This document shows positions 1-17,933 of a stretch of 64,000 nt of DNA, one piece after another; positions within the stretch are counted from its first letter, which is position 1, and each line of letters starts with the position of its first letter. Under the pieces are notes generated by a model. The model was not told where the DNA came from. It ran no database searches and was given only the letters and a program-made list of their open reading frames with translations. This DNA is from Macrostomum lignano (taxonomy: Eukaryota), in contig NIVC01001279.1 in assembly GCA_002269645.1 (NCBI GenBank), positions 258,503-322,502 of the forward strand, written 5' to 3'. The translations under genes were made by a program, and so were the position numbers.

Positions 1-3000
1 GGAAAGTTTTAGAGCTCAAATCAGCTTCAACGATGGCGTCTGTAATAGACTCGTCCCAGCTTTGCTGTACTGTAGAAAAAAAACGCGTAGATGACAGATC
101 GCAACGTTGGGTATTTTTTATTTTAGTTTATAGTTGCAATTAAGTAAGTATCAGTGTTGAAAGCTTTCTACATGTAGTTAGAAAGTTATTAATTTTCATT
201 CCAATCAACGGAATAGCTAGTGTATCGTTAAAAAATTATGCGAGTCTATTGAAGATGGGCTTGATCATCGCAGGGATGAGTGATCAGCTGACAAACGCTT
301 TAGCTAGTTTAACAATGGCGTCAAAGTCTACCTTGAGCGAAGCACCTAGTGACGATATCTGGTCGCGAGTTCGCGTGCTGACGGGCTGCTATTAAAGTAG
401 TGAGTAAACACACAGTTAGTGGTGACGATAACTGACGGCGCCGATAATTCGATTACGGATTATGTATATTTGCAGGTTACACATGTAGTGGTTATTGCTG
501 ATGCTAACTGGTAACGAACAATTGCAGTGTCAATGGAATGTGGCTTCGAAGATGACCTTAGTGGGTAACACTACTAAATTGAGAGCGATCTTGAACTACT
601 GTTTTTTTCAGTGTTTACTAAAATCAAATGACTGGCGATAGGAACAGCAGCGGCACACCACGCTCAGTCTTCTCCGAAGCCACAGAATTCAAAATGTTAA
701 ATATAACTATTTAATGCAGTAAAACAAAGCATTGCTTACTATTTTCAATAAACATACCCTGGTAAAAGTGAAACCAATTGATATAAATAAAGTACATATT
801 AAATATTTTTTAGTAGATATTAATCGACGAACTGGGAGAATAAAAGAACCACCAACGTCACAACCTTTAAGGGCTGTTGCCACTGCCGTCTCGTGTGGAT
901 CAGCGCCAATTTCGCTAGAAGTCACTTGTTGTTGAAAAGGCACCATTTAAATTTTAAACGACTCCTGCAGTAGCAGCCCCAACTAAGCGGATAAAGATTT
1001 TAGCAAACGGCGAAACAAATGTTGAGCTGTTAATTTTTGAGTAGAGTTCGAGAAGGGTTTGAGTGTAGACTCAATAGCTGCTTGCTTTTCCTTAGTCTCG
1101 TCGTTTTGATGCTTCTGTTCTGTTTCTAACCTGCTGTTTCTAAAAATAGACTTGTCGGACCATATGCAGGAATAAAAAATGCTCATATTGTAACACAATT
1201 CAGCGTGCATTAAACGCTAAATCGTGATCGCGCATTGGCTTGAGTCATCTAATCAGCACAAGAAATATACCGTCTTTACAATGCAGCTATACGGTGGATG
1301 TTTGGTAATTTTACGTAACCATAAAGATTTTACGGTATATTATTGAGTATTACCAAATGAAATTACGGATAATGCATTACATAATGTCCAGAAAAATCTA
1401 TATATCTGTGTATTTTTGTCAATGGACAATAGCGCGCCGCGAGAAAATAGACAAAACACATAATATTAATGAGTAGTGATCAAAGATCAAACGAAAACGA
1501 TTATGAGATGAGATCGATTGTCAAGTCTCCCACTCTTGCCAATTCAATTCAATTCATTCAGCCGATCAAAATTAATTGCTATTTAATTGACACCTTTTTG
1601 CAAATATTTATAGACCTATTAAATACCCTTTCAGTGCAGGATATGATAAAAACGAAGCTCGATTGAAAGTGGCAATGCCTCGATTGAGGTTGATACCGCT
1701 GCACTAGATGGATTAATGATATTATGATATTCAACAGAGTCGATTCTGATGAAATGTTAGTTAATTGAGTGACATAATTGAGAATGAGATTGATCAGACT
1801 AATATATTGCCAAAAATCTATAAAATTATATACATTTAGTGGTTAATCCTCAAAAAAAGTATTAACTAACATATTGCCGGACTGTAAAGAAACTTTGATG
1901 GTACTCTCTGTTGTATATAGCTACTGCACATTGGTCAGGCCGAATTAAGTCAAAAGGTATGGCTGGTGAGCTGGATCGGATGTTGAAAGTTCGTTCGTAT
2001 ACATCTAGGGGAAATGCACATGCTACCCTATCATTTTTCCAACATTAGATAGTCATAGTTCCACGTGCAATCCCGTGTCATATTTCTATCGACTTGGATA
2101 TACCAGCTATTTTAACCAAATTTTTAACAAACTATGTGATAAATTATTCGTTTACAAAAGGTTTTACGGCACTTTTACGCTCTTAATCTCAAAGCAGAAA
2201 TATTCGTAAGCTTTGCACGCGAACTGATGAAGATGAAAGAATTCATGCAGATAAATTAAAACTTTTGGTAAATGCAAATTTTATAGTCATATCAAGACTG
2301 TTGCATACGAGCTACTGCAACTAGCTTGAGTATGAGCACGAGGCAGAAGAAGTTTCTACTTTCATATCGTCTGCTTTGCTCTGCGTGAGCTGCTTAGATG
2401 CTTAAATTGGAATTCAATTTTGAGCAAAAATTAAGTCGCTAAGACGGAACGCCATCAACCTAGACATTTATGACACTTTGATGCGGGCAAATCTATTAGA
2501 AGGTAGCTATCCAACACTGTAAATGTTTTCATCTATTTTGCTTTCCATTTTGAAGGAAGGAAAATTTTAATTTCCGTGTAGAAATATTCACTCGATACCG
2601 TTAAATCTACCGTTAAAGTATTTTCTGTTGATGCAGTTATCAGACATCATATTCTCTGTGGGTACTTCAATGAGCAAATGCACTTGCACTAATATTTTAA
2701 GTCCGGGAAATCTGAAATACCTGGAGTGAAAGCGTACCTACTTTCTCAACGAAACGCAACGAACACTTTTATACATTTTCAACAACAGCAAACAACAAAC
2801 AATTTCAAGAGCCTGAAATGATGCAGAAATGTTTTACTATTGACCGAGTTTTGGGCACAATAATTCAAATTTCAGTCCCATCATTACCTCTATCGAATGT
2901 CATTATTGTGCTGTCAAAATCGAAGGTCAGTCCTTTTTTTATAAAATTAAAAGCTGAAATCAGCTTTTTAGTGTCTGCCAATAAGGATTGGAGGGAACAG

Positions 3001-4588
3001 TTGGTGCTCAATAAAGGTTCCGGTACAAGGTCTCCCAGCTTTAGCGTAGCTTACCCCTAGGCAATCAGCCAAACTAAACCAGCTCAAAGATTATCTTCAT
3101 ACAAGACCTTCTTGATTCGACTTTACTAAGCGGTCCTCGACAAGACTCTCTACAGGCAATCCTTTCGCTTGTTTTTTCAGGAAATGCAATGAAATTCGAT
3201 ATCCGTTGGAAATTTGCCTATCACATGTGGTTACCCTGGCTCTGTTTGATCCAGATTTCAGAGAAAAGAGAGACATGAAAGCCTCCTTGGAAAATTTTAG
3301 GAGGCAGTTTTTAGCGAAAAAATACACCTCGGAGATAGGAGGTTTTTTGATTTCAGCACAAAATTGTTATTGTTTTTGATAGAAGGGAGACCCAATGTCC
3401 ATCTCTTGATATGTCTATCTTATAACTCATATATCATAAATCATCATAAATAAAAAATCACAGGAATGGCGCAGCTCGACTCCCCTCATTGATTTTATGA
3501 ATCTATTGTAGCATTCGTAGCTTAATGACAGTGCAACTAAATGTGTAACAGAATGACTACATGTCTGTAAAAAAGACAATGCAATGGGAAAAAACCTGCA
3601 GTTTCCCATCCTTCTACTTAAGCAGTCCTTGGCTTTACGTCTGCGGAGGATTCATTTTTCTTATCCATACTTTTCAGACGCTTAGCACTAAGCTCGTGTG
3701 AAACTTCCTGCTTTCTGAACAGCCGTCCTTGAGAAAGGCAGTAGGTTAAATCCTGTCTAGCTTTAACAAACCTCCATCGCTCAAGAATACTTTCGTAGTG
3801 GTGACTCTAAGCAGGAAATATACAACTTGCAGAGACAGTCAGATTGCTTCAGATATCATCATTCCTAATTAATTAACCTTCGACAAGCCTTAAAGATGTG
3901 AAATTTATTTCACTATATAGCATCTACATAATTAAGCTAAGGGCTCAGTCTGAGGTTGTCCTTTAGACTTTTGACGGTTCAGCAGAGTTATTTTATTTGA
4001 TCTGATCCGAGATATCTTCTGGCAGGATTGCCTGACTTTTGCTTGGCTTGAGTTGGGAATGCACAGTTGGCATTTGGCTATACAGAAGATAGCCGGGAAC
4101 CCTAGATGCCTTGAGAGTCTCAGGAAATGATGGGTTGCAAGCTTCAATTCGCGAGCAAGCAATGAAAAGTATAGGATTGCAAAAATGGAGAGGGCAGAGC
4201 TTTTTCGACAGAAAATTACCTCGGTAGACCCGGGCAACCCATCGCTCAGATGCGTGGGAACAATGCGCGGCGAGAGACGTTCAGAGTGACGCATTAGCGC
4301 AGACACGTCCTCAATCCCTGTGCAGCTGATACCCAGTCAGGCAGTTAGGCCGAAGAGGTGGGAAGGAATCACATGAATAGAGCGAACAAAAGAGCGCACA
4401 GAATTATTATTTTACTGGAAGGGTCAACCTAGCGCACGTAATACTGCGGCTCGAGAAAGCTTTGTTTGTTTTTGTTTGCTACAGTGGCTGACTTTACTTG
4501 TTAAAAATTATTAAAGTTAATGATTAATCTACCATTAAGTAAATAAAATTATAAATCACTCACTAAGTTATTCAATCAACAAACAAAC

Positions 4589-5557
4589 CTATCTATCTAT
4601 CTATCTATCTATCTATCTATCTATCTATCTATCTATCTATCTATCTATCTATCTATCTATCTATCTATCTATCTATCTATCTATCTATCTATCTATCTAT
4701 CTATCTATCTATCTATCTATCTATCTATCTATCTATCTATCTATCTATCTATCTATCTATCTATCTATCTATCTATCTATCTATCTATCTATCTATCTAT
4801 CTATCTATCTATCTATCTATCTATCTATCTATCTATCTATCTATCTATCTATCTATCTATCTATCTATCTATCTATCTATCTATCTATCTATCTATCTAT
4901 CTATCTATCTATCTATCTATCTATCTATCTATCTATCTATCTATCTATCTATCTATCTATCTATCTATCTATCTATCTATCTATCTATCTATCTATCTAT
5001 CTATCTATCTATCTATCTATCTATCTATCTATCTATCTATCTATCTATCTATCTATCTATCTATCTATCTATCTATCTATCTATCTATCTATCTATCTAT
5101 CTATCTATCTATCTATCTATCTATCTATCTATCTATCTATCTATCTATCTATCTATCTATCTATCTATCTATCTATCTATCTATCTATCTATCTATCTAT
5201 CTATCTATCTATCTATCTATCTATCTATCTATCTATCTATCTATCTATCTATCTATCTATCTATCTATCTATCTATCTATCTATCTATCTATCTATCTAT
5301 CTATCTATCTATCTATCTATCTATCTATCTATCTATCTATCTATCTATCTATCTATCTATCTATCTATCTATCTATCTATCTATCTATCTATCTATCTAT
5401 CTATCTATCTATCTATCTATCTATCTATCTATCTATCTATCTATCTATCTATCTATCTATCTATCTATCTATCTATCTATCTATCTATCTATCTATCTAT
5501 CTATCTATCTATCTATCTATCTATCTATCTATCTATCTATCTATCTATCTATCTATC
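4589..5557 (+). repeat. Perfect (CTAT)n microsatellite, ~970 bp
   Basis: Uninterrupted ATCT tetramer run read directly. Confidence 0.99.
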
Positions 5558-17288: not shown

Positions 17289-17298
17289 TACGAGCGTA
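17289..17298. other. TA-CGAGCG-TA insertion (probable DNA transposon excision footprint); empty allele at 1803-1804 in the other arm
   Basis: Right arm reads GGCAATA-TA-CGAGCG-TA-TTAGTCTG. The left-arm reverse complement reads GGCAATA-TA-TTAGTCTG. Confidence 0.75.
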
Positions 17299-17933
17299 TT
17301 AGTCTGATCAATCTCATTCTCAATTATGTCACTCAATTAACTAACATTTCATCAGAATCGACTCTTGTTGAATATCATAATATCATTAATCCAGCGGTTT
17401 GCTCTAGTGGCAGCGGTATCAACCTCAATCGAGGCATTGCCACTTTCAATCGAGCTTCGTTTTTATCATATCCTGCACTGAAAGGGTATTTAATAGGTCT
17501 ATAAATATTTGCAAAAAGGTGTCAATTAAATAGCAATTAATTTTGATATGCTGAATATTGAATTGGCAAGAGTAGAAGACTTGACAATCGATCTCAGCTC
17601 ATAATCGTTTTCGTTTGATCTTTGATCACTACTCATTAATATTATGTGTTTTGTCTATTTTCTCGCGCGCGTTATTGTCCATTGACAAAAATACACAGAT
17701 ATATAGATTTTTCTGGACATTATGTAATGCGTTATCCGTAATTTCATTTGGTAATACTCAATAATATCCCGTAAAATCTTTTCGTTTTTTCTACAGTACA
17801 GCAAAGCTGGGACGAGTCTATTACAGACGCCATCGTTGAAGCTGATTTGAGCTATAAAACTTTGCCTCTAAACCATTTCAACCACTTCACCCAACTTCGC
17901 ATCACTTCTTTTGGCTTCTTTTTGACTATTTTA

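Follow-up and report, generated by a model that had tools for sequence, protein, structure and literature searches.

A large inverted repeat at the end of a Macrostomum lignano contig: a probable head-to-head misjoin of two homeologous copies

Introduction

The final 64,000 bp of contig NIVC01001279.1 in the Macrostomum lignano assembly Mlig_3_7 (GCA_002269645.1) hold a palindrome whose arms are identical around a very short loop and diverged further out. The question that this locus raises is whether such a structure is carried by a chromosome or was made by the assembler. The stretch is called the window here; its position 64000 is record position 322,502, which is also the contig end, and a window position is obtained as the record position minus 258,502. 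A preliminary description, made from the sequence alone, had offered three options, namely an old inverted duplication kept identical near the loop by gene conversion between the arms, as in mammalian Y palindromes, a recent fold-back event joining two diverged homologues, or an assembly artefact in which two haplotypes were joined head-to-head. We compared the arms at base level and with upstream DNA of the same record, and the result favours the last option: the centre of the palindrome is probably an assembly misjoin that put two homeologous copies of one locus head-to-head. The contig runs along one copy of the locus, turns at 9472-9502 and returns for 54.5 kb along a second copy which is about 2% diverged.

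The genome of M. lignano is made up of three subgenomes S, L1 and L2 with a single-nucleotide polymorphism divergence of 1.9% (L1-L2) and 2.4% (L-S), and its paralogous copies have about 98% local identity, with differences that are mainly insertions or deletions (indels) (PMC10733133). Mlig_3_7 was assembled from PacBio continuous long reads (CLR; SRX1063031) using Canu 1.4 with an errorRate of 0.04, then polished by Pilon and scaffolded by SSPACE; REAPR called 64% of its bases error-free and reported 872 errors of fragment coverage distribution (FCD) inside contigs, and 180 Mb of it lie in duplicated blocks of at least 95% identity (PMC5730564). S/L-chimeric scaffolds account for 36% of its length (PMC10733133). 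Also, the karyotype of the sequenced line, DV1, is unstable and has extra copies of the large chromosome MLI1 (PMC5730564, PMC10733133). As for the reads themselves, PacBio data obtained without amplification contain palindromic reads, caused by missed SMRTbell adapters, at a rate of about 0.5%, to the detriment of assemblies (PMC6218980), assembly graphs become tangled by fold-back reads (PMC12870357), and Canu filters for undetected hairpin adapters and chimeras (PMC5411767). Among the papers listed for palindromes in M. lignano, none was relevant as judged by title.

Results

Extent of the palindrome

Two upstream stretches of the same record were used for the left arm: L001 (record 204,475-225,842) and L002, which overlaps the window start (L002 21477-21803 is window 1-327 at 100%). 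The 21.5 kb of L002 that precede the window were found to be colinear with window 17,785-36,097 in reverse orientation, and L001 likewise repeats window 43,914-61,438 in reverse. A third stretch from a gene locus on NIVC01001279.1 (L003) is, as its reverse complement, exactly window 14116-38546. The three stretches surround the receptor protein BOX15_Mlig009868g1 and two proteins that match an open reading frame at window 26.7-28.6 kb. The mirror structure is thereby documented over record 204,475-322,502, about 118 kb, with mirror homology present in all the left-side DNA compared, up to 52 kb from the centre. The palindrome of at least 17.9 kb in the preliminary description does exist, but it is far larger than was stated, as L001 and L002 upstream mirror the right arm. 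The 54,498 bp of the right arm make up the entire rest of the contig.

Overall, the arms are 97.99% identical across 43,393 comparable right-arm bases. They also differ by several kilobase-scale indels, and at successive anchors the excess length of the left arm ranges from 1.7 to 4.5 kb. This level of divergence equals the one published for S, L1 and L2 (PMC10733133).

The fold and the identical core

On self-alignment of the window, 4589-9471 and 9503-14385 form an inverted repeat with 4,883 nt per arm and 100% complementarity, which bears out the earlier claim of an identical core around a loop. Between these arms lies a non-palindromic, T/G-rich loop of 31 nt (9472-9502, TTTAGCCTGTGTTGTTGATTGTTGTTGTTGT), placing the fold point at about record position 267,989. 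The right arm begins TTTTTGTTG, and the T/G-rich loop passes into it smoothly. The loop sequence, taken as the 27-mer 9469-9495, is present just once in the window; the left-side record DNA of L001 and L002 does not contain the 31-nt loop. Of loop-proximal sequence, the only other copies are those of a dispersed repeat of about 300 bp (9870-10167, similar to 60768-61079), which stops short of the fold, and transfer RNA and Rfam scans of window 1-20,000 showed no structured element there. If only unique sequence is counted, the two arms share 3,914 bp (5558-9471 against 9503-13416) with 0 differences.

Moving outwards, the left arm has a pure tetranucleotide array, (CTAT)242 at 4589-5556, and the right arm its mirror, (GATA)270 at 13418-14497, which is 28 units or 112 bp longer. 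The first arm-to-arm substitution is at the outer edge of this array (C at left 4588 against T in the mirrored right arm); outward of it, 289 bp are identical before a further substitution comes at 4298/14788. The tier boundary is the microsatellite itself. The preliminary description had put the first substitution at about 4298/14788, which is wrong because the base at 4588 already differs, and it had taken the arms to be identical out to 4299/14787, which is right for the unique core but overlooks the 112-bp difference in array length. It may be noted that both arrays run for about 1 kb without one interruption, an unusual purity that perhaps owes something to consensus calling or polishing.

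Beyond the arrays, 1323-4588 and 14500-17781 are 97.7% identical, with 48 substitutions and 22 gap openings, as the earlier description of diverged outer arms with substitutions and small indels had it. Many of these indels are multi-base and not in homopolymers, therefore the differences are real divergence and not read error. The 1.24-kb indel noted before was also found, as a segment of 1,241 bp (82-1322) in the left arm only, with pairing resumed at 3-81 against 17863-17785. We considered this segment as a transposon and rejected the idea, as terminal inverted repeats are absent and a second copy is missing from the DNA compared (window, L001 and L002).

A second near-identical block

Identity to the mirror, taken per kb over the right arm (Table 1), is perfect in the core and lower outside it, as the two-tier picture of the preliminary description requires, but it is not monotonic. 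At 25,809-31,049, that is 16-21 kb from the loop, the right arm departs from its mirror at just 2 positions over 5,241 bp, the unbroken matches being 3,543, 1,030 and 666 bp long. The length of this block is comparable to that of the core, and it spans the long exon of the gene BOX15_Mlig000527g1 together with adjoining minisatellites. It is either the outcome of real gene conversion or recombination between subgenome copies, or a local collapse in the assembly. Pilon polishing with RNA-seq was considered as the source of the identical blocks and discarded, because this gene also has exons at 24.1-25.4 kb, in a stretch with about 20 differences per 500 bp. Since a second block of 5.2 kb is present so far from the loop, the identity of the core does not need any loop-specific mechanism. 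Stretches of about 5 kb with perfect or almost perfect identity are thus a general property of these two copies.

Genes and repeats on the arms

Among annotated proteins, the arm genes have only two copies, both on NIVC01001279.1. BOX15_Mlig000527g1 on the right arm (24116-28546, minus strand) is modelled with 843 amino acids (aa) in several exons, and its left-arm copy (L002 10001-11803) with 600 aa in a single exon. An open reading frame (ORF) for a rhodopsin-type G-protein-coupled receptor (GPCR) at 49723-51090 of the right arm is identical in 453 of 455 residues to BOX15_Mlig009868g1 of the left arm. We found no exact-product record for this or for the right-arm ORFs at 42450-43988 and 39749-40471; for the receptor, the reason is that 2 residues differ from the annotated left-arm protein. 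Such paralogous gene pairs on both arms are as expected for two homeologous copies.

The seven-transmembrane-like ORF in the identical core (Table 1) matches Pfam 7TM_GPCR_Srw with E=0.0028, below the family cut-off. It has no homolog among 5.8 billion proteins and no exact record, and is unannotated in GenBank; it is intronless and GC-rich (about 58%), with a very basic C-terminus. Next to it, the Ty3/Gypsy-type fragment carries 75-nt direct repeats at 7107-7181 and 8733-8807, which the preliminary description had read as the 5′ and 3′ long terminal repeats (LTRs) of a Gypsy element with 4 differences. The 4 mismatches are there over the 75 nt, but the LTR label is doubtful, because the repeats are 1,626 bp apart and enclose only the ribonuclease H (RNase H) and integrase fragment.

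A dispersed repeat of about 300 bp adjoins the Gypsy fragment in the core (9870-10167, mirror 8807-9104) and is present again at 60768-61079 and 42360-42491, the copies being 80-86% identical; it is probably a short interspersed element. Another repeat of about 275 bp has two direct copies, 55195-55470 and 56631-56907 (98.9% identical), that flank a GC-rich minisatellite, and a third at 40394-40668 (88% identical); these may be LTRs or else belong to a small dispersed element. Minisatellites crowd the window (17959-19426 with a 45-bp unit x33, 20595-21118, 23793-24185, 29368-30021, 30718-31975, 38372-38843, 55871-56587 and 63335-64000). Several of them yield long spurious ORFs, and the similarity of the arms is lowest (92-95%) where these arrays face their mirror copies.

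Table 1. Features of the palindrome in window coordinates, with right-arm identity to the mirror copy
Feature	Position	Strand	Remarks
Left arm, part in the window	1..9471	+	mirrors 9503-17866; extends upstream to record 204,475 at least
Left-only segment, 1,241 bp	82..1322	+	from the arm alignment
Pure (CTAT)242 array	~4589..5557	+	outer limit of the identical tier, left arm
Identical inner tier, unique part	5558..9471	+	mirror 9503-13416
376-aa seven-transmembrane-like ORF	5802..6932	+	mirror 12042-13172, minus strand; inside the identical core
Truncated Ty3/Gypsy-type fragment (integrase remnant and RNase H)	7107..8807	-	mirror 10167-11867
Loop (fold point)	9472..9502		only adjacency that is necessarily false if the palindrome is an artefact
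Right arm, 54,498 bp	9503..64000	-	fold point to contig end; record 268,005-322,502; about 2% diverged
Pure (GATA)270 array	~13417..14499	+	counterpart of the left array; outer edge carries a substitution
Second near-identical plateau	25809..31049		mirror L002 7499-12739, 8.7-14.0 kb upstream of the window start
47-48-bp tandem repeat	63335..64000		contig and right arm end within it
Identity to mirror	9.5-14 kb		100%
Identity to mirror	14-26 kb		92-99% per kb
Identity to mirror	26-31 kb		99.9-100% per kb
Identity to mirror	31-36 kb		92-99% per kb
Identity to mirror	44-55 kb		98.4-99.7% per kb
Identity to mirror	55-61.4 kb		94-99.5% per kb

Discussion

Either arm, taken alone, is a sound colinear version of the locus, and it is enough that the 31-nt centre be false for the whole palindrome to be an artefact. 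A misjoin of this kind explains, with no further assumptions, the geometry at the contig end, the match of the arm divergence to that between subgenomes, the boundary at the microsatellite and the paralogous gene models on both arms. Perfect palindromes with arms of kilobase length do not remain stable in vivo if the spacer measures only some tens of bp. A 31-nt spacer is therefore hard to reconcile with arms that are old enough to have gained 2% divergence and kilobase-scale indels. Of the options in the preliminary description, the head-to-head joining of haplotypes therefore fits best, provided that the haplotypes are taken to be the S, L1 or L2 copies; in its favour are the mirror symmetry that continues to the contig end, the 98.0% identity and the chimerism of a CLR, Canu and Pilon assembly.

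As for how the join came about, we infer a fold-back (palindromic) PacBio CLR read, which would have arisen from a missed or degraded SMRTbell hairpin or from a snap-back molecule. Such a read may have escaped the hairpin filter of Canu if the fold lay within a truly identical stretch, where both of its halves would be backed by normal reads. After the join, the contig would have followed the second copy backwards until its end. The identical core would then be one of the blocks of about 5 kb that the copies share, bounded by the 1-kb microsatellite beyond which they differ.

Several observations weigh against this account. A SMRTbell adapter is not clearly recognisable in the loop. Local alignment with the adapter gave a weak similarity, 16/19 matches over the (GTT)n part only, with a score of 12.5; this is within the 95th-99th percentile, being beaten by about 1-5% of the 60-nt segments of the window and so in roughly their top 2-3%. 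It is unexceptional for a window so rich in low-complexity sequence and cannot serve as proof. Also, the 9-bp stem of the adapter was not found in the loop, and the loop may be genomic rather than adapter. Nor did inspection show any microhomology or short inverted repeat that accounts for the exact junction: CAACAA at the arm end could pair with TTGTTG in the loop, but extension from this pairing fails to give the observed junction. The Canu filter should remove a lone hairpin read, and survival of the join means either that the filter failed or that several reads span it. Finally, colinearity over window 36.1-43.9 kb is assumed, the comparison having covered the left arm on either side of an 11.2-kb stretch at record 225,843-237,026.

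The palindrome may instead be a real, old germline inverted duplication of at least 110 kb, in which patches, including the 4-5 kb next to the loop, are kept identical by gene conversion between the arms. Blocks of at least 99.96% identity (9.5-14.4 and 25.8-31.0 kb) within arms of 92-99% do have the pattern of patchy conversion, a length-polymorphic microsatellite where the tier stops is a plausible barrier to heteroduplex extension, and passage of the join through the Canu hairpin filter would be no surprise. We still regard this as unlikely. It makes the equality of arm divergence and inter-subgenome divergence a coincidence, the 31-nt spacer is far below the kilobase-scale spacers of stable natural palindromes, and arms of 98% with kilobase-scale indels do not resemble the at least 99.9% of palindromes maintained by conversion. 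Moreover, the contig ends before the right arm reaches unique sequence, and the arm genes have just two annotated copies, both here, which is what plain homeologs would give. The Y-type option of the preliminary description, with homogenisation near the loop, is disfavoured on the same arm identity, indels and spacer and also by the second plateau.

Equally improbable, if not slightly more so, is a real and recent head-to-head fusion in DV1, by a fold-back or U-type exchange between diverged copies (for example L1 and L2 of MLI1, or S and L) at an allelic position where they are locally identical. The arms do diverge at the L1-L2 or L-S level all the way out, as such a fusion predicts, and the junction is within a block identical between the copies; the karyotype is also known to be unstable with extra MLI1 copies (PMC5730564, PMC10733133). 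However, the product would be dicentric or acentric, and none is reported in these two papers; the exact junction has no microhomology or short inverted repeat to explain it, and at the level of sequence the signature is indistinguishable from that of a chimeric read. The recent fold-back of diverged homologues in the preliminary description has no positive support, and no microhomology is visible. A mixed origin, with a real recent core palindrome of about 10 kb in one copy and a wrong exit taken by the assembler within the 1-kb microsatellite that attached the homeologous flank, would account for the identity tier stopping exactly at a pure 1-kb array of unequal length in the arms, where overlaps are ambiguous. 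But a real palindrome and a misjoin would both have to occur, each independently of the other, and the right arm as it stands already follows the second copy validly. Instability is also expected of a perfect 3.9-kb palindrome whose spacer measures 31 nt. We consider it very improbable.

What follows depends on which of these holds. If the palindrome is an artefact, then it is a matter of curation only: about 54.5 kb (record 268,005-322,502) are misplaced and wrongly oriented, and Mlig000527, Mlig009868 and the neighbouring models on the arms are better taken as homeologs on different chromosomes and not as an inverted local duplication. Before a palindrome in a CLR assembly of a polyploid genome is given a biological reading, it needs support at read level. 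If it is real, then it is an unusually large (at least 110 kb) and nearly spacerless palindrome in an animal germline, relevant to the instability of M. lignano chromosomes following whole-genome duplication; and if the fusion in DV1 were true, it would be a physical trace of karyotype rearrangement in a neopolyploid.

Among known systems, the ampliconic palindromes of primate Y and X chromosomes are likewise large gene-containing inverted repeats with stretches of perfect arm identity. They differ in having at least 99.9% identity along whole arms and unique spacers of kilobase scale, as opposed to the 98%, kilobase-scale indels, 31-nt spacer and patchy identity found here. Fold-back inversions and isodicentrics (from U-type exchange, breakage-fusion-bridge cycles or inverted duplication with deletion) share the head-to-head junction and the short asymmetric spacer, but sister-chromatid events of this type have arms that are identical throughout, whereas here identity extends for about 5 kb only. 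The S/L-chimeric scaffolds of Mlig_3_7 (PMC10733133) are similar in that paralogous copies about 2% apart are joined in one sequence and that their divergence is dominated by indels; the published ones were found by switches in k-mer coverage, while the present case is a head-to-head inversion at an allelic position. Fold-back misassemblies from long reads (PMC6218980, PMC12870357, PMC5411767) differ by having a clean adapter in the loop and one locus duplicated, as opposed to two diverged genomic copies beyond 5 kb. With these misassemblies the present palindrome shares the head-to-head orientation, the very short spacer, one arm that continues to the contig end, the origin from PacBio CLR and Canu, and the identity near the fold.

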